DNA of 62,689 bases, the filler included, from Dugesia japonica (Eukaryota), in the NCBI GenBank assembly GCA_001938525.1. It is 5 parts of 5 records of this genome, joined end to end, with 100 filler letters (N's around TTAATTAATTAA, not from the genome) between each part and the next. Parts side by side here need not be neighbours in the genome. Positions count along the whole stretch, not along the records: positions 52,109 to 62,689 come from MQRL01499319.1; 4 more parts are not named here. One strand, written 5' to 3'. Position numbers and translations under genes: made by a program. Below the pieces are notes generated by a model. The model was not told the DNA's origin. It worked only from the letters and a program-made list of their open reading frames with translations, and did no database searches. Of the stretch, positions 50,901 through 62,689 are shown piece after piece. Within the stretch, counting starts at the first letter, position 1. Every line of letters begins with the position of its first letter.

Positions 50901-53093
50901 ATTATTTGGTTAAGAGTAGATAAACCTGATCATTTGAGTTAGTTTTGTAGCTTTAGATGTGATTCAAATATATCTTAATTTTAACTGTGACTTACGCAAA
51001 AGTTATTTTAGTCATATCATAAACCGTAAAGAGTGATATTGAGAAAAAATCAATAAAAAGAAGTTTAAGCAAACTTTTATTTATTATTTCATTAAAATAA
51101 AGAAAACGCTTCGATCAATGTAAAATGTAATTTTATAGAAATTCGACTTTTAGACATTTTTCTTCTTCAGGAATGATCATTAATAAAATGTGATCAATGG
51201 TTAAGTCCTATAATTACTCTCAAAATAATTGTATTTTCTTTTGTAGTTTATCAATAAAAATTGAATTCAACACTTTCATTTGATAAAGGAAATTCATTTA
51301 TTCCGGAAAGTAATTTACGGTTCCAAAGATTTCAGATTAGACAAGCTTGACTGGAGTTGGAAATAAAATTATTGAATTTTAAAATGGTTTAGAAATTTAC
51401 TTTGTTTCAACTCTTTTATTAAAGAAAAATAATTTTCGTTAATTCAATTTACTAAATAGGCAATTAAATATTTCATTGGTGTTATTATCCCAGTTAAATT
51501 GTAAATTGAAACATTTAAATTTGCTTTTTTCACAGAATTTCTCTGTAGAAAAAATCCTCATGTTTTGTGAAATTGAAAGTGACATATTACAAATGATCTC
51601 CTTGAACCAATTAGATTCAGTGTAAAAAGAAGTATATTTATATAATTATGAACGACATATTGTATTCCATGATTTAAATGGTACAATTCATCTTTTAAAA
51701 ATGTCTGAAAAATTATAATTCATCATCTAAATTAAACTAATAATAATTAGTCATAATAACTAATTTAACAAACTTAATAATAATATTAATAATTATTATT
51801 ATTATATTATTATAATTATTATTATTATATTATTATAATAATTATTATTACATATTAATAATAATAATTATTATTATAAAGTTTTCAAACAGCAAACACT
51901 ACTATTGATTACTTAGAATAATTCATGTAACTTTTGCATATTTAAAGGATTTATGAATATATTAGTTTGTTCGGAAAGTTACTTTGTTTAAATATATTAG
52001 TTGATTTGNNNNNNNNNNNNNNNNNNNNNNNNNNNNNNNNNNNNNNNNNNNNTTAATTAATTAANNNNNNNNNNNNNNNNNNNNNNNNNNNNNNNNNNNN
52101 NNNNNNNNTATTCAGATTTATGTGACGATTATCTTTTATTGTTAGGAATTTTGATTGAAGTTTAAATTCGAAAGCTTTTTTGGTTGATTATTGATGAGTG
52201 TCGAGGATATTATTTGTAATGTTTTTTTCCTATTTGTCCAAATTTAGAAGTTCTTGTAGCTATGGACGCTTTGTGTTCATCGAACCCATCATATTATTAC
52301 TTGTTAAGATTTTGTTTGGTAAGTTATTGTTCAGTTTGTTTTAGAAATCCAACACAAGTATCTGCAGAAATAGTCTGAAAATAGTTTTAAAATAAATAAG
52401 GAAAAATATATTCTGAAGTTAATNNNNNNNNNNNNNNNNNNNNNNNNNNNNNNNNNNNNNNNNNNNNNNNNNNNNNNNNNNATTGTTTAATAAAACTGAT
52501 GGAACACAAAACAAATGGAGATAAAGAGAAAAAGCAATGGAATTTGAAAACTAAGCATAAAATAATTAATAGGTGGACATACATATTGTATAATGAAATC
52601 CTAAATAATATGAACCAAATGAATAATTAAAGATTAGTAAAATTAGTAAATAAAAGATGAGAAAAATCTAACTTAAATATTTTTATAATATACAAAAAAC
52701 AACAAAGAATTAAATTGAATACGAATAATAATTACCTTTCGTTTTTCAAATAATGTAAATTTGGTTTTTTTTGTCTAAATTTACATATTAAAGTATGTGA
52801 TGCATATTTGTATGAACATCCCAAAGTTTAAGGCTTTTTGACATTCGCCTATTTCACCTGGAAATTTTTAGAGCATTTAAACCTGTATTAAAATCGTTAC
52901 TCATATGCATACTAAAATTCAATAAATAATTTGTTAACTTAAGAGCACGAATAAAATAATATTGAATTCATTTACGAGTTCAGTTAATAAATGAACTCAA
53001 TTATGGACTTTTAGTTAAAAAGAATCAATTAATAATTAATTCTACTCAAACAAATCGCCAAATATGATAAGATAAGACAAAAAAATTATCCTC

Positions 53094-53102
53094 TATATAT
53101 AA
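53094..53102 (+). promoter_or_regulatory. Candidate TATA box of the small peptide gene
   Basis: TATATATAA about 35 nt upstream of ATG 53133; weak evidence in such AT-rich DNA. Confidence 0.35.
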
Positions 53103-53132
53103 TTCAATCGAGTTTCAAAACATTATTATAAA

Positions 53133-53916
53133 ATGAACTGCATTTTCATTCTTGTTTTGTTCATCAACTTATTTCACCTTTTAAAGAGCGGTATTTTGAT
53201 TGTTATTTTCTATTTTAATATTTTAGTAATTATTAGTATTAATAATTGTCATTATACATATTAACCTGAATTATGTAAAAAAAAGTTGATTTTTCTACTT
53301 TAGACAATGACCGAGATTTCATGCCAGCACTACATGATTTTATAGATATTGATGCTCATAAACCAGGACGTAAGTAGTCAGTTAATATCATAAATAAATA
53401 TATTTTTATTTTAAAATGTTAATTTTAAAGAAAGTTTATAGGAAATCTGCAGTTTCGAAGTGTCTTTGATTGGATGTTTTCTTTTGAAACTTTATTTTTC
53501 CAAATTAAATTTCTAACAGAAAATTTTTTTTAATATATGAAAACATCAAAGAAATTTAAATTAGAAAAAAAGCGCATTACAATGAATTTCTATAAATAAA
53601 ACAAAGAAAAATTTAATAAAATTAATAATTTTTGATTAAAAATTCATTGAAAAGAAAAACAAACTTTGTAAGAGAACTGATGAAAATTTGTAGAGAAGAG
53701 ATTCTTTTTTTTATTAATAAATTTTTTTGAATTCTTTTCGATTAGTGTAAAAGATTTTAATTTTTATTTTATTTTTCACAATTTCAGTTAGAAGATTTTT
53801 AATTCGCAGCCATCTACAACGATTTCCAAATATAAAAATGAAGTATTTTTTTTATTAATAAATAATTTTGTTTCTTTGATTATTTAATATTCAGGTATCC
53901 AGATTTAATTAAATAA
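53133..53916 (+). CDS. Predicted 66-aa secreted peptide precursor (4 exons), not recognised as a known family
   Basis: Exons 53133-53190, 53304-53369, 53788-53842 and 53895-53916 with GT-AG introns in compatible phases (1,1,2). Product MNCIFILVLFINLFHLLKS-DNDRDFMPALHDFIDIDAHKPGLRRFLIRSHLQRFPNIKMKYPDLIK*; exon 1 is a signal-peptide-like segment. Confidence 0.65.
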
Positions 53917-56256
53917 ATTTATTTTTTTCTGATAAAAAAATAAATTCTTAATAAATTTTGTCTTTTATGATTTTATTTCGAAAATAGTCGTGATTTAAAG
54001 AAATTATATTTTGAAATTATTGTTACATAATTTTTTATTTATTTCTAAGATTAATTAATTAAATTTATTAATGAAAATTAAATAAACCAATTTTTTTTTC
54101 ATTAAATTGATGGCTTTGATCAAATTGTTGTTTTTTGTTTTTTTTCCATTTCTTTTTGGATAACTTTAAAAAAAAGAAATAAAAAAAGCGAAACAATATT
54201 TTGATTGAAGCTATTGATTTAATGAGATCTCATATGAGATCAATAGTTAAGTCCAACAATTATTCTCGCAATAATTGTAAACTTTATTTAAATAATTTTG
54301 TAATTGTTTGTATCTTTTTGTTTAAATTACTGTTCAAATAAATATTGGACTGATGGAATCGGATCACTTTTATTTTTTCTAAAATGTAATTTGCCATGTT
54401 AGATGAGTTTGAATTCACAACNAGCTTCCATAAAAGATTTATTCACAAAACAAAAACTATGAATATAAATTTGTTTTGTTCAAACCAATTTAAAAATTTA
54501 TTTTCGAAACGAAAAATAAAAAATATCACATTACATTAATTAAATTTATTTTAACTTTTTTATAAATAACGTAAAATTTATATTTATATATTTATGAAGA
54601 AGACTATTGTCGAAAATTTGAACTTTTTTACAAATAAATTTTGTTTTGATCGAAGCCTTATCTTATTTTAGTAAAATTAAAAAATACAATAAAAAATATA
54701 TTTTGTTGAAAATAAGAAATTTGATAATTTTTTCCAAATTACAAATATATTATAAAAATTCCAAAATTTTAATATACATTGCGAATTAAAAAATTTTATT
54801 TAACAAATTATAAATTTCAAATTCGATTTGTGTAAACTAAATAAATTTAATAACTCGTTTCCTTTTAACCGATAATTTCAAAATTAATTTTACAAATTAT
54901 TTTAATGATTCAATTTAAATATTTAGCAAATCTGATTTTAATAAATTCCATTTCAAAATACAAAAATATGCTTTTAAAAACTAGTTTTTTTATTATCGAT
55001 TTTCTACATAAATATGAAAAATGTCGAAAAGTCACTGTTTATAACTTTGAACAAATTTGTGTAAACTAAATAAATTTTATAACTTATTTCNTTTTAACGG
55101 TTAATTTAAAAAAAGTTATAAACAGATTTTCATATTTATGTAGGGTTTTAACTTCAATTTTGTTTCTATTATTTATTTATTATTTATATTATTTTATAAA
55201 TCATATATTTTAAATGTAAAATAAAAAACATGTTTCTTCGTTCAGGATTTGTTTTTAATGTTTATTTAAGAAGGAAACATCAATTATAACAAAAATTTAT
55301 AAATAATATATAAAATNTCAAATATTTAAATATATTTGATAAAATTAAAGTATAGAAACGAAATTGAAGTAATAAACCTCACTTTCCGAAATTAGAACAT
55401 CAAAAACACAAGCACATTAAAATTTAACAAAGATTTTATCATTGTAATGAAATATTGATTTATTATAGTGTCATAACTAGTAACACTTACAATTAAACAT
55501 TAATTTAAAAATAATTAAACAAATTTGGACATTACAGTTAATACAGTTAATAAGATCAATAAAATTTATTTAGAAAGACGTCTCGCCACCAATTAGCAAT
55601 TAACGAACCCCAGGTTGGTCAATTCTGTTATAAATAATAAAAAAAAGAAAGCAAAATATCTATATAGCATTTAATCAGCAGGCTTTTTTGGATCTGCTGA
55701 CTGTTCTTCGGGTTACAAAGATTCAATTTTTTGATATATATTGATATTATTATTATTTTAATTAACAATTAACTATATTTATTATTGACAATATTTATTT
55801 TNATCAATATACATAATCTCCATTATATTGTTTGTTTGTGGGGAAATAATGCTTCAGTTAAACAAAATATTAAAAAAAAATAATGAATAGAAAATTGAAG
55901 AGAAAATTATGAATTGAAAATAATTGAAATTAGATTTCTATAAATAAAAGAAACTATTAAATAGATAAAAATTGAGAACATTTTACATAATTTATCTGGA
56001 AGTCAAGACTATAAAGAAATTATTAAAGTGAAATATGACTCAAATTTAAATAGAATATTAATTAAAATTTATCAATTACAAATATTATTTTGAACTGCAC
56101 GAAATTACAGTACTAATTAAAAAGGTTAAACTTAAATTTAATGTAATTTATAATAAGTAAATAAATTAACCAATTAAAATAAAATTAATTCCAAAAATTT
56201 TTTTTTTTAATAATAATAAATTTTAATAATAAAAAATTCAACAAATCAACAAGTTA

Positions 56257-56290
56257 ATTACTGAAGAAGACAAAAGTCGAAAATTGAAAA
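56257..56290 (+). ncRNA. Minimal hammerhead-like motif
   Basis: CTGAAGA-a-GAC(aaaa)GTC-GAAA-att. Confidence 0.5.
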
Positions 56291-56688
56291 TATAAATAAT
56301 AACTAAAAAAAATATTAAAAAATAAAATTTTGGACGAGGTTTATAATTAAATNAAATCAAAATTAAATTTCGAATTTAATAAAATTTGAAATTATATGGA
56401 ATTTAATATTGATCTGGTACAAATATGTAAAAATTGTGAATGTCTGCAACTTTGAGCATTTCAGAAGAAATAAAGCAGGACAAGAAAAAATTCTAAATAC
56501 ATAATTTCCCACGTCTGTATGCAAATTTGTCGGAACACTCAAGTTAATAAGGTTAATTTAATTTTAATTTTTAAAAATTTTCATAGTTTAAATAAAACTT
56601 ATCTATCTATTGATTTATAATCATTTAAAAAGAATTTTGAATTCATAAAATTTAATGTTCTTTCACTACATCAAGCATTAAAAAAGTT

Positions 56689-56725
56689 AATTCCTGATGA
56701 AGACTAAGTCAAAAATTCGTATTAT
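56689..56725 (+). ncRNA. Minimal hammerhead-like motif (G12 mutated)
   Basis: aattc-CTGATGA-a-GAC(taa)GTC-aAAA-at-TC-gtatt, followed by the family motif TTTGATCGAAG. Confidence 0.5.
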
Positions 56726-56929
56726 TATCAATAACAAAAAATAAATTTGATCGAAGTTTATATTTTAATGTGTATATATATAGTTTCCATACATAGGTAA
56801 ATATTTTTAAATTAATCATTTAAACATTCATGGAATGTTAATGATTTATACAATATGCCAAATAATTATATAATTGTTTTAATTTTCCTGAAGTTTAAAA
56901 AGTAAACAATTTTTATGGAAGCCTTTTTA

Positions 56930-58020
56930 GTTAATACTTTATAGTTTATTTACAGTATTCTGAAAGATTTGTTTGAATAAAGAACAATGAATTGAAATAG
57001 TATTGTAGACTGGCTCAGAAAACAGCCAGTGGGTTCCTTCGGAATTTAATAGAAACAGTACGAGCATCACGCACAATACTGTGGTAAAATTTAGAACAAA
57101 ATTCACAAAAATGGAAGTGTTATCGTACTGCCACTGATAATAGCACAACACGTGCAATGATTTCAGCGATAACAAGAAGTATCACGAAAAGTATACGGCG
57201 GTTGTCAGCTGATCAAATATTAATCGCATTTTGACAACAAATAAATGGCATACATACAAATTGCATTTGGCGCAGCATTTGAGTGGAAACGATCAGGATA
57301 GACAAAATGAAATTCTGTGAATGGGTATTGAGCAAAATGAAGGATTATGCAAATTTGGCAAACTGATGAAGCAAATTTTTACATTAATGGAGATTTTAAT
57401 CGACAAAATCTACGTTATAAGAGTAATGCTAACTCTCACTGGATCTATTCGACGAGAATTCAAAGTGCCTCTATAGTGATAGTGTGGTCCGAAATTCGGG
57501 ATAACAGAATTATCGGACCATTTTTTGTTGGTGGAAATCTGAATAGTAACAAGTACCTCACTATGCTGCAAGGAAAGATTTTTCCATCCCTGCTAAATGA
57601 TGATGTCAACTTATAAGTTTACTTTTGGTATGATATAGCTTAAGTTCATTATGGTACGCACATACGACAATGGTTATATACGCAGATTTCAAATGCTTGA
57701 ATAGGTTTGCGTGGTTCTGTGTAATGGCCTCCAAAATCCTCAGATCTCAGTCCATTAGATTTTTATCATTGGTGCTATTTGAAAACCATGTTGTATCAAG
57801 AAAAGATTTGAAACATAAATGATCACATAAACGGATCACCGATGCCATTACAAGCATAACTACAGTTGTACCTACACGTGTTCTTTAGCAGTGGATAATG
57901 CGCATTGAAATATGTTTCCAGAGTAATGGTGACCATGTAGAGCATGTTAAATAAATAAAAGTAGTTTTCCTTTCTTTTTTATATTTATTTTTCATGTGTG
58001 TAAATTTATGAGACATGTAT
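56930..58020 (+). mobile_element. Decayed Tc1/Tc3-like transposon (copy 1)
   Basis: TDEANFYINGDFNRQNLRY, RIIGPFFVGGNLNSNKYLTML and WPPKSSDLSPLDFYHWCYLK. Confidence 0.85.
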
Positions 58021-58156
58021 TTTTTTCAGACAATTATGGAATTTTTAAACCACTGAAATTTCACTTAAAAACCGTCATTTTTAGAAGAGATAACCTAGTT
58101 ATTTTTAAATTTCTTTTAAAAGATACAAATATATCATTATAATTACAAGTAATATA

Positions 58157-59300
58157 TAGGCTATATCAAAAAATGTGTACGTTTTAAAATTTTAAAATAT
58201 TTTAAATTAAATGTATTTGTTTAATTAATTCAAAAGATAAGCATATATTTAAATCTGTATTATATAAGAAATAATTGGCGTAAATTATTTTTTTATACAT
58301 GGCAGCCACCAGCCTCAATAATTTTCTTCAGAGTTTCAATATATGTATCCAATGCTTTACCCATATAAATATTTGTGAATTTTGGTAGCTCACTATTTAG
58401 AAATGTTCTTATTTCATCAATATATTTAAAACCTGTACAACTTCTCTCCAGTCTTTTAAAAAGATAATTGTCACTTATATTTATATTTAGTGAATAAGGA
58501 GGTTGACGAAGAAGTTTTACATTTTTAGAGTCTAAGAATTCAAAAGTATAGTGAGCAATATAGGATAAAGTATTGCCATACATATGTTCATAAATTTTTT
58601 GTGGGAGAACACTTTGATGTCGTTTTTGAAGAAAATTAATGAGATTTTCAAGAAAATGGTACCCATTTGTGAAATAGCAATAATGACCATGTACTTCTTT
58701 TATATCGTTGATCTGACAGGAGTCTGAGAAGGACCATATCCACTAGCAACAGCTTCTTCAGTTAACCAATTAAAAAATTTGTTAGTTGCTTTAATTTTTT
58801 GACAATAAAAACTTTTCGTCCACAATTACAAGATTTAGTCTACACAACATATTTTGTAGTAAATCAATTAATAAATTACATTGATCAACACGAAGAGCTT
58901 TGCCGTCATCTGTAAGAACATAAGGTACCCATTTTGTGTGATAACATAGAACCTCTAGATCATCTTGAATTACACGTTGAATCACCGGATGGTTTATTTG
59001 CAAAAATTCAGATATTTCGTCAATAGTCATATTACCATATTCTTCTGTACACCTTTTAACATTATCAATGTTAAGTAAACGTTCCTCCCTTTTTCTTCTT
59101 TCACTTCCTTTCTGGCGATGAAATGTTTGTCTTTCTCCAGTTTGACATGGTCTTATAAGTCTTCTAAATATAATAACATTTATATATTCCTGCGGCCATG
59201 CTTTATGAAGGATCTCATAAAATTTTAAAAATCTCTATTATAAAGAATTATATCAAAACCGAAATAAAAATTAATCATTTTAAAGATTTTTCTATTTAAT
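58157..59300 (-). mobile_element. Decayed mariner-like element
   Basis: TKWVPYVLT, VIVDEK and LLRQPPYSLNINISDNYLF. Confidence 0.8.
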
Positions 59301-59404
59301 TAAAAAATTTTGAAAGCAAATTTGAGTTAATTTAAAATGAAAAATTTATAAACCAATAAAATTGTGATAAAATATAAAGAATTTTGTAACAGAGATCTAT
59401 TGTC

Positions 59405-59895
59405 GTATTTCTAGAGTAAATAATTTCTTTTATCCAAGGTGGGACANAGTACCTGGTCAATTTTTATCTTTCGAACTAAGCATATTTTTACAGCAAACCC
59501 TAGACGAAATATGTTCAGAACTTTATTTTGAATCGAATGCTACTATGTAAAAAGTGATATAATAAGTTTTGACTGAGATATTCGTAGATCAAGGTCAAGT
59601 GATTCAGTGCGCTTATGCTTTTATCTAGGAAACTAAAAATATTTCTACAGCAAATCCTATGTATAAAATGTTTAGAATTTTATTCTGAGTTCAAGGATAC
59701 CAAATTTTAAATTGTACAATAAAAATTAACTGAAAAATTTTTCGATCTTCACGTGGAAAAAATTGACCAATCTAACCCGAATTCGAAAATATTTCTTACT
59801 TATTCGTAACGTTTAATAAAAATCCTTCATTTCTGAATCACTTCGTTGGCGGGGGAGATAGGGGGTACTGGTCCAGTGCGCTTATATCTTTCTAC
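59405..59895. repeat. Dispersed non-coding repeat (copy 2 of 8020-8640)
   Basis: Same subrepeats and GC-rich end as copy 1. Confidence 0.7.
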
Positions 59896-59899
59896 TAAC

Positions 59900-60699
59900 T
59901 AAAAATGTTTATGACTGTTGTCAGTAGATCGAGTATTAGTTGCATTTTGACAAGAAACAAATGGCATCCATACAAATTGTATTTGGCGCAGTATATAAAT
60001 GGAAACGATCTGGATAGACGAATTAAATTCTGTGATTGGGTATTGAGCAAAATGAATGATGATAAAAATGTGACAAACAAGACCTTGTTCGCCGATTTAG
60101 GAAATTTTTCATTAATAGAGAGGTTAATCAGCAAAATCTACGTCATTAGAGTAATAATAACACTCACTGGATCTGTTCGATAAGAATGCAAGGTGCCCTT
60201 ATAGTGACAGTATGAGACGAAATACGGAATAACAGAATTATGGGACCATTTTCCGTTGGTGGAAATAGCGACCAGTACCTCAACATGTTGCAAGAAGAGA
60301 TTTTTTCAATCTCTGCTAAACGATGATGGTAACTTCCAAGCTTACTTTCAGCAAAATGGAACTTCCAGATGCTTGGATAGGCCAGCGTGGTTCTGTGTAA
60401 TGGCCTCCTCAATCCCCCCATCTCAACTTATTATATTTTTATCTTTGGGACCATATGAAGGCTTTAGTGTATAAGGAAAAGATTGGAAACATAAATCATC
60501 TCAAAGAACGGATCACTGACGCCATTACAAGCATAAATACAGCTGTGCTTACACGGGCTCTTCAGCAGTGGATAATGCGCATTCAAATCTGTTTCCAGAA
60601 AAATTGTGATCATGTAGAGCAATTATCTAAATAAAAATGTTTTCCTTTCTGTTTTATATTTATTTTTCAAATGTATAGAAACTTATGAGACATCCTGTA
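59900..60699 (+). mobile_element. Decayed Tc1/Tc3-like transposon (copy 2, 5'-truncated)
   Basis: Colinear with 57200-58020 (NKWHPYKL, RIKFCDWVL); right end aacttatgagacatcctgTA. Confidence 0.85.
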
Positions 60700-62169
60700 A
60701 ATATAAATGAGTGTATTTTTTCCCACAATTATGGACTTTATAACTACTAAAATTTCACTTACAAACCATCATTTTGGAATAGTGATACCCTAGTTATTTT
60801 TACATTTCTTTTAAAAGATACAAATATACCATTATAATTGCAAATAATATAATAATGATGACAGATATGTCTGTTTACATTTGTGTTAATAATGTTTGGT
60901 AGATAATTTACAGTGAATAAGACACGAAATATATAATAACCAAAAATATTGAAGTAAATAAATAGTTAAAACAACTGATATTTATAATTTGTTTAATCAT
61001 TTTTAATATTTTATTTAAAATTCCCATTAATACATCAAGAACAAATACAATTTACTAATTATTGTAACAACATTATAAAACAGTAGAGTACAAATGGGTC
61101 CAGCCACAGCACTAAAACATTTCATTAAAAAAATTTCTATCGAGGCTGCTAAAAATAACTAATAGTAAATCTAGATCACAAATAGAAAATAAAACTTTGT
61201 ACAACACTGACACCAAAGATCAGCTTTTACAATTCGTTTAACTTCTAACTTAATTTAATCACAACTGTTAAATAATTCACTAATTTATAAAGATAAAGTC
61301 ATTTGAATATTAATTTATTTTCAACATTAAACAAATTAAAATCAGTTGTAGAAATATTTATAAAATCTCGATTAAATATTTGTAGAAACAAATTAAATAA
61401 TGTAGTAAAAATTTTTCAAATTTCATGAATTCTGAAAACACAAAATAAATGAATGAATTTATTTAAAAGTATATACACAAAAATCTATCCAAATATTGTA
61501 TTTTATTGAAAAATATCCTTTGAAATATTTATACTTCCATAAAGATTCAACCAGTTTATTGGGGATGACATTACCACATTTTCATTATTCTAAATATAAT
61601 TAAACAATAAACAAAATCGAAAATATTTCTGAATTATCAAATAAAAATTACATATANNNNNNNNNNNNNNNNNNNNNNNNNNNNNNNNNNNNNNNNNNNN
61701 NNNNNNNNNNNNNNNNNNNNNNNNNNNNNNNNNNNNNNNNNNNNGTTATAAGTCAGACCTGTGGTTTAATGTAATATTTATTTCCTGGTTCACGGCCACA
61801 ACTAAGTTGCACTTGCCTAAACTAAATATGTACATATTTGAAATAATTTTAATTATTATATTCCTCTCCCCCAATGTTGATACGCGTCTAATATTATTTA
61901 TTGAAATAACTCAGAAAATTTCGATGTATACTGTTATAAAATTCAAATTATATGTCAGCCCTACGATTGGATGTAATAGTTATTTCCCGACCGCAGTCGC
62001 GACTAAGTTGCTCATGTCTGATATAGAGAAATACCATTAAAATTGATGAACTCAAAATTCTTTTTAAATGATTGTAACATGATTATGAAAAGATTAACAT
62101 GTTCAATTTAGTCCAGAGATTCAAATAATAGTCTTTATCAATTTTTGGAGTCACTTAAAATTTTCAGTG

Positions 62170-62505
62170 CAGGAGTCTTAAACCTATTACCCTTGGGTAA
62201 GTTGGTTACCCAATTCCCTCCTCCGAGTTAGTAACTTGGGGGTTTTAATATGTAATTAAAATATTAAGTATAATTAATAAAATTGAATATTTTCTCAAAT
62301 TTAACGTGATAAAAATTCACATTTCGGGTTTATTTAAGAATTTGAAAAATATACATAGATCAAGTTATTATTTTATCTAAAAAATCTTTTTTCTTCACTA
62401 AGAAGGCGATATATAAGAAAAAATATATCACTTACCCAAATCACTTTTTAAAAGCCCAATTTTGGTGGATTTGTACCCATTGGCAAGTAAGGTTTACGAC
62501 CCCTG
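62170..62505. mobile_element. hAT MITE
   Basis: TIRs caggagtcttaaacct / aggtttacgacccctg; 8-bp TSD tttcagtg / attcagtg. Confidence 0.85.
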
Positions 62506-62689
62506 ATTCAGTGGGTCTAATAATGATTTGAGGGTCAATAAATTATTATTTGTAACAAATTTTATATAAATAAACAGGCTTAATGATGAAAAATGTCAAG
62601 AATCTGAGAATTAAAAAATTTATACGGCCTAACGTTCAAACCCTTGTTGACACAAATAAACCCACCATATTTTACAATCACGCTTATCA

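Follow-up and report, generated by a model that had tools for sequence, protein, structure and literature searches.

We describe a candidate small-peptide gene in Dugesia japonica (NCBI GenBank assembly GCA_001938525.1), centered on a 66-nt segment of the plus strand, 53304-53369, that is very probably a genuine coding exon. Coordinates refer to the window, the whole stretch of 62,689 nucleotides that was analyzed, which joins 5 parts of this genome; the locus lies in the part at 52109-62689 (MQRL01499319.1), hereafter the piece. A small spliced gene on the plus strand is likely, yet unproven because no relative turned up. Among complete models of the locus, a small secreted precursor is the most economical, and we give it roughly an even chance. 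The locus is best filed as a candidate orphan among small secreted prepropeptide genes in general.

The piece reads as eukaryotic DNA rich in non-coding sequence, and its composition does not resemble that of a human contig at all. Its GC content is 25% overall, with long stretches at 8-20%; its mechanical ORF list holds no long ORF, no tRNA was found in it, and no Rfam family scored above threshold. The sole Rfam match within the piece, to the plant miRNA-precursor family MIR837 at 54113-54211 (plus strand), scored 24 bits where the gathering score is 117 (E 0.37) and is almost certainly a chance match in AT-rich DNA. A 58-nt direct repeat (54826-54883 and 55055-55112, 88% identical, spacing 229 nt) lies in featureless, AT-rich surroundings. 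Assembly gaps occupy 52424-52481 (58 N) and 61657-61744, and isolated Ns occur elsewhere, for example at 54423, 55091, and 59447. Common regulatory motifs are of no evidential value here because they are too frequent: AATAAA occurs 6.9 times and TATA-like motifs 4.5 times per kb per strand. Two TATA-like motifs, at 53094 and 53096 on the plus strand (spanning 53094-53102), lie 31-39 nt 5' of the candidate start codon at 53133. They are a possible, weak candidate for a core promoter; a start site about 30 nt downstream of them would leave nearly no 5' UTR, placing the motif too near the ATG.

The initial annotation proposed that this region hides a four-exon gene, built from an ATG, three in-phase GT-AG introns of 113, 418, and 52 nt (one with a GTAAGT donor), and a stop codon. 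All of these elements are present, with exact coordinates. Joining 53133-53190, 53304-53369, 53788-53842, and 53895-53916 yields a 201-nt frame for 66 aa, which opens with the ATG at 53133 and closes with the stop codon at 53914-53916. The donors of introns 1, 2, and 3 read gcg/GTATTT, gac/GTAAGT, and gaa/GTATTT, and the acceptors of all three introns are T-rich tracts that end in TTTAG or TTCAG. The gene was also said to be invisible to the ORF track, as indeed it is: the ORF list gives just one ORF, of 43 aa, at 53133-53264, and this ORF is exon 1 continuing into intron 1. If the orphan gene is real, it would have escaped annotation because each of its exons is shorter than 70 nt.

As the main argument for a gene, the in-phase GT-AG introns carry no weight. 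Starting from the ATG at 53133 and allowing up to three GT-AG introns, 19,667 complete models can be built, 7,999 of which code for at least 60 aa. Strict sites (GTA donors and TTYAG acceptors) leave 17 models, 6 of them of at least 60 aa; the strict alternatives include a donor at 53236 and two read-through forms, one of exon 3 to the stop ending at 53858 (64 aa) and one of exon 2 (43 aa). For signal-like ATGs, the null was a first-order Markov sequence of local composition (150 kb, both strands), with GT-AG completion required inside 800 nt and a product of at least 60 aa. It produced 77 ATGs with a signal-like start, of which 69 could be completed, corresponding to ~29 per 62.7-kb window; under the strict site classes, which were chosen post hoc, 4 could be completed, or ~1.7 per window. 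With null counts this high, an ATG, three in-phase introns, a stop codon, and a hydrophobic start are together a chance yield. All nulls in this study are Markov models set up after the locus had been seen, and their splice and codon criteria are generic rather than species-specific.

These counts are among the grounds for the reading that there is no gene at all, only a chance chain of open stretches and GT/AG dinucleotides in AT-rich non-coding DNA, selected by a reader with many degrees of freedom. The 7,999 alternative models from the same ATG and the ~29 signal-like models per window in random sequence both favor it, as do the absence of homologues in our searches and the frequency of hydrophobic starts, AATAAA, and TATA motifs at this composition. 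We consider it very unlikely. Set against it are features of exon 2 that the initial annotation did not use and that are jointly expected only ~1e-4 times per window, and the placement of all three strict exon-like segments of the piece on one strand.

Exon 2 (53304-53369, plus strand) is the best-supported part of the model. It spans 66 nt, is open in a single frame, begins and ends in phase 1, has a GC content of 0.38, and codes for the 22 acidic residues. Intron 1 on its 5' side (53191-53303, plus strand, 113 nt, phase 1) has a GC content of 0.16 and an acceptor composed of a pyrimidine tract and TTTAG. Intron 2 on its 3' side (53370-53787, plus strand, 418 nt, phase 1) has a GC content of 0.18 and combines a GTAAGT donor with a long T-rich tract and a TTCAG acceptor. 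A small GC island within intron 2, at 53430-53470, has no usable frame. Within the 4.4 kb at 52480-56900, GTAAGT occurs on the plus strand only at the exon 2 donor.

We defined an exon-like segment as a TTYAG acceptor, then 50-250 nt with at least one open frame, then a GTAAGT donor. Three occur on the plus strand of the piece (52248-52318, 53304-53369, and 62112-62196) and none on the minus strand. With local composition preserved in blocks of 100, 200, or 500 nt, the nulls predict 0.16-0.18 such segments per strand per piece and 0.01 for the kilobase around exon 2; they yield three or more on either strand with a probability of at most 0.0025. Composition sets exon 2 apart as well, since 5 Mb of AT-rich Markov sequence produced 39 exon-like segments, none with a GC content as high as 0.30. 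Its GC is distributed over codon positions 1, 2, and 3 as 14/21, 6/21, and 3/21, a bias with a null probability of 2e-5 to 1e-4 among open stretches of the same length. Moreover, a periodicity scan of 52109-56908 in 60-nt stretches, made without selection, peaks at exon 2, with a value reached by the maximum of a null 4.8-kb sequence in 1 of 60 runs. From these rates we infer, as a rough product, the joint expectation of ~1e-4 per window given above. Because the splice-site, GC, and periodicity tests all exceed their nulls, exon 2 is not a product of chance; 53304-53369 has the canonical acceptor and donor, the open frame, and the codon-position bias of a spliceosomal coding exon.

Two other accounts of exon 2 were rejected. 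A decayed trinucleotide repeat could generate periodicity, and TRF finds no tandem repeat at this position. An exon on the minus strand would place the GC-rich phase at codon position 2, and the minus strand has no exon-like segments. The third exon-like segment of the piece, 62112-62196 (plus strand), has a TTTAG acceptor, an open frame, a GTAAGT donor, and a GC content of 0.33, and no useful phase with exons 2 or 3; near 62441, a 10-nt stretch matches its donor region in inverted orientation. The segment could belong to another plus-strand gene as an exon, or form part of a repeat.

The candidate first exon is more contested. Exon 1 (53133-53190, plus strand) consists of the ATG and a 19-codon hydrophobic, signal-like start, and ends in phase 1 at a weak GTATTT donor at 53191; an alternative in-phase GTA donor is available at 53236. 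A signal-like first exon ending in phase 1 would arise by chance within 400 nt upstream of the exon 2 acceptor in 2-4% of cases, and in 0.8-1.6% if a GTA donor is also required. Phase-1 introns are known to be over-abundant at signal-peptide cleavage sites (PMC1626468). Base composition counts against exon 1: GC occupies the third codon position in 11/19 codons, compared with 6/44 in exons 2-4 (Fisher p = 0.0006). In terms of three-base periodicity, GC in exon 1 falls on position 3 of the proposed codons, opposite to exon 2, an effect that is not significant region-wide. Another frame of the exon 1 region has a pattern rich in first-position GC, like that of exon 2; it was rejected, as it has no ATG and no upstream AG. 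On balance, whether 53133-53190 is the first coding exon joined to exon 2 is an evenly poised question.

The leading alternative places a real exon 2 in a different or larger plus-strand transcript, spliced from the exon-like segment at 52248-52318, with exon 1 either spurious or an alternative first exon. This rival or additional 5' exon can be drawn as 52219-52318 (plus strand), with an in-frame ATG at 52219; its exon-like part, 52248-52318, has a TTTAG acceptor, an open frame, and a GTAAGT donor at 52319. It satisfies the strict exon-like definition (~0.17 segments expected per strand in 10.5 kb), ends at a much stronger donor than the GTATTT of exon 1, and joins exon 2 in phase because it leaves one spare base. 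The discord in third-position GC between exons 1 and 2 points in the same direction. The assembly gap at 52424-52481 sits within the would-be intron from 52318 to 53304. In one variant, 52248-52318 belongs to the 5' UTR and is joined to an acceptor before 53133, for which TTYAG acceptors occur at 52871, 52983, and 53014 (for example, the TTTAG ending at 53014); in another, the gene extends past the left edge of the piece at 52109 or into the 58-N gap. However, 52248-52318 has no codon periodicity in either open frame, and the start of the product from 52219 appears, by eye, less signal-like. A signal-like phase-1 exon 113 nt from exon 2 would, on this account, be a 2-4% coincidence, and exon 2 is found in no protein among 1.84 G representatives. 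We judge the larger transcript unlikely, and return to the small secreted precursor as the preferred reading.

Downstream of exon 2, the model is carried by exon 3 (53788-53842, plus strand, 55 nt), whose codons specify RR and the greater part of the basic tail. Its acceptor is the first TTYAG past the exon 2 donor, and the in-phase frame stays open for 23 codons, a combination with a chance of 0.15; the periodicity of exon 3 is weak, with GC at 6, 6, and 3 of 17 for the three codon positions. We think it reasonably probable that exon 3 is the next exon after exon 2. Intron 3 (53843-53894, plus strand, 52 nt, phase 2) pairs a weak GTATTT donor with a TTCAG acceptor, and exon 4 (53895-53916, plus strand), 22 nt including the stop codon, has a GC content of 0.18 and is without independent support. 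If intron 3 is left unspliced, exon 3 instead reaches the stop at 53856-53858 and the product is 64 aa. Whether or not intron 3 is spliced, the frame closes within 7 codons past exon 3, beside one of two plus-strand AATAAA motifs (53857-53862 and 53912-53917, one by each alternative stop); because the motif is so frequent, its presence near the stops is only consistent with a poly(A) signal. Of the four exons claimed, then, the frame arithmetic stands, and intron 3 and exon 4 are indistinguishable from read-through to the stop at 53856-53858. We regard intron 3 as a tentative feature, somewhat more likely to be absent than present.

The joined 66 aa yields exactly the segments that had been quoted for a signal peptide, an acidic segment, an RR pair, and a cationic tail. 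The layout comprises a 19-aa hydrophobic start, a 23-aa acidic segment, RR, and a 22-aa tail; the net charge is +1 for the signal and -4 for the acidic segment, and, past RR, +4 for the tail. A hydrophobic core is present, with a Kyte-Doolittle 11-residue mean of at least 2.5 within the first 25 residues, a level reached by 1.6% of random ATGs with 19 open codons. The n-region contains no basic residue, and cleavage at the exon 1/2 junction would put S at -1 and L at -3. The dibasic pair occupies residues 43-44 and has K at -6; the motif by itself does not demonstrate cleavage.

Two other hallmarks of bioactive peptides are absent from the product. There is no cysteine after the signal segment in the 66 aa, and therefore no cysteine framework such as defensins, knottins, and toxins of that type have. 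An amidation glycine is missing from the spliced model: L separates G from RR, and the C-terminus is K. The string G-R-K-stop ends only the 43-aa reading that retains intron 2. The tail, of net charge +4, contains two prolines and has a helical moment (muH) of 0.38, a value attained by 14% of its shuffled versions; because of the prolines and of a moment so common in shuffles, a classical amphipathic helical antimicrobial peptide is not clearly indicated.

The right-hand part of the piece has a different character. Decayed transposon remnants span 57.0-60.9 kb. Two partial copies on the plus strand, 57240-58156 and 59925-60851, lie in direct orientation and are ~83% identical over ~900 nt (77-92% by segment). 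Both are broken by stops and frame changes, their longest open frames being 89 and 92 aa, and Pfam assigned no family to either. Between them, a third transposon-like remnant on the minus strand (58290-59220) holds ORFs of 96, 79, 52, and 41 aa. In PDB, its 96-aa ORF matched only the SETMAR domain derived from mariner, and not significantly (E 0.84); a search of the transposon ORF of this region against 5.8 G proteins gave no candidate. We call the remnants mariner-like, a putative label that is tentative because it is based solely on the weak SETMAR match. A 64-nt inverted repeat (56615-56678 and 62014-62077, 84% complementary, 5.3 kb apart) flanks the whole transposon cluster; it could mark both termini of a larger composite element, or consist of two oppositely oriented copies of a short one.

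Searches for relatives of the candidate gene ran exon by exon, and bear out the statement of the initial annotation that no family could be recognized: none returned a similarity or a family-profile match. The exon 1 ORF had no candidate among 5.8 G proteins of 24-75 aa. The exon 2 stretch had 0 matches at E <=0.001 among 1.84 G representatives of any length, a search that an exact copy of its 22 residues should have passed, according to its estimated score. No Pfam family was found for any of the exon stretches, and back-translated, degenerate DNA patterns of exon 2 gave 0 matches in metagenome contigs or prokaryote genome contigs. Within the 10.5-kb piece, exon 2 has no paralogue and no similarity to the transposon remnants. 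Substrings of the peptide matched nothing in 8.4 million papers.

The absence of homologues in these searches also favors a further alternative, in which the exons are a relic (a pseudogene or an exonized fragment) or belong to a long non-coding RNA, and no functional peptide is made. The coding signature is found in exon 2 only and not in exons 1, 3, or 4, the surroundings are decayed transposon DNA, and constraint cannot be read from very short open frames alone. Yet the frame runs unbroken from the ATG to the stop codon, with canonical splice sites, and exon 2 is unlike the transposon remnants or anything else in the piece. We hold a relic or non-coding origin to be quite unlikely. For the preferred reading, a secreted orphan peptide, as the initial annotation had it, the case consists of exon 2, a signal-like exon 1 in phase with it, a compatible exon 3, and exons for which the searches returned no relatives; the part that goes beyond this is the prepropeptide function, which we infer from the layout.

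The layout resembles the acidic-propiece and cationic-peptide precursors of anurans and Hydra, or a small neuropeptide precursor; for each of these, the exon-wise comparison gave no similarity or family motif. Anuran skin antimicrobial precursors consist of a signal peptide, an acidic propiece, a dibasic site, and a cationic mature peptide (e.g. PMC7073735). The candidate shares this order of parts, with an anionic segment of net charge -4, a dibasic site, and a cationic, cysteine-free C-terminal peptide of ~20 residues. The differences are considerable. The anuran family is defined by its conserved signal and propiece, whereas the model here is similar to nothing searched; the dibasic site is RR here and KR there; the tail here has two prolines and no marked amphipathic moment; and the source is not a frog but a genome of ~25% GC with mariner-like remnants. 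Arminin-type orphan peptides of Hydra consist of a signal, an anionic N-terminal part, and a cationic C-terminal part. By that description, the candidate is comparable: it would be a small, secreted, taxonomically restricted precursor in which an acidic part precedes a basic one. No similarity turned up in the exon-wise searches, which returned no such comparator.

Arthropod neuropeptide and peptide-hormone precursors offer another parallel. Like them, the candidate is small, carries a putative signal peptide followed by a phase-1 intron (PMC1626468), and contains an RR site preceded by a basic residue at -6. Unlike them, it lacks a G-[KR]-[KR] amidation site in its spliced form, contains no repeated peptide copies, and carries no Pfam peptide motif. 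Myticalins, a multigene family, carry the signal and the cationic peptide first, followed by an anionic C-terminal extension (PMC5577615). The candidate resembles them as a small multi-exon gene with a signal peptide, a linear cationic peptide, and an anionic propeptide; however, its parts stand in the reverse order, and it is single-copy, with no paralogue in 10.5 kb.

If the model holds, expression of the locus would proceed as follows. Transcription and splicing would join exon 1, coding for the signal peptide only and ending in phase 1 near the cleavage region, to exon 2 and then to the exon that begins at 53788. The frame would end either at the stop at 53856-53858 (3 exons, 64 aa) or, past the 52-nt intron, at 53914-53916 (4 exons, 66 aa). 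The 19-residue start would direct co-translational entry into the ER, and signal peptidase would cut near the exon 1/2 junction, where S at -1 and L at -3 make only a moderately good site. A convertase might then cut after RR (K at -6) to give two peptides, an acidic 23-mer and a basic 20-22-mer free of cysteine. That exons 1 and 3 share a transcript with exon 2, and that the product is secreted, are predictions from the sequence; processing at RR is, from the same kind of evidence, doubtful. Taken to its full extent, the proposal is a tentative one: an orphan gene of restricted taxonomic range, whose small secreted prepropeptide would give rise to one acidic and one basic linear peptide. Such an orphan gene may be recent, possibly born in the AT-rich intergenic DNA beside the transposon cluster.

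On its own, a single further candidate for an orphan secreted peptide is of modest interest. In such AT-rich DNA, an in-phase chain of GT-AG introns proves nothing, while splice-site class, GC contrast, and codon-position periodicity can pick out a 66-nt exon that has no homologue. If the model is true, the locus would be a micro-exon small-peptide gene of the kind missed by ORF- and homology-based annotation in extremely AT-rich genomes. Such genes often code for lineage-specific secreted effectors, including immune, venom, salivary, and signaling peptides.
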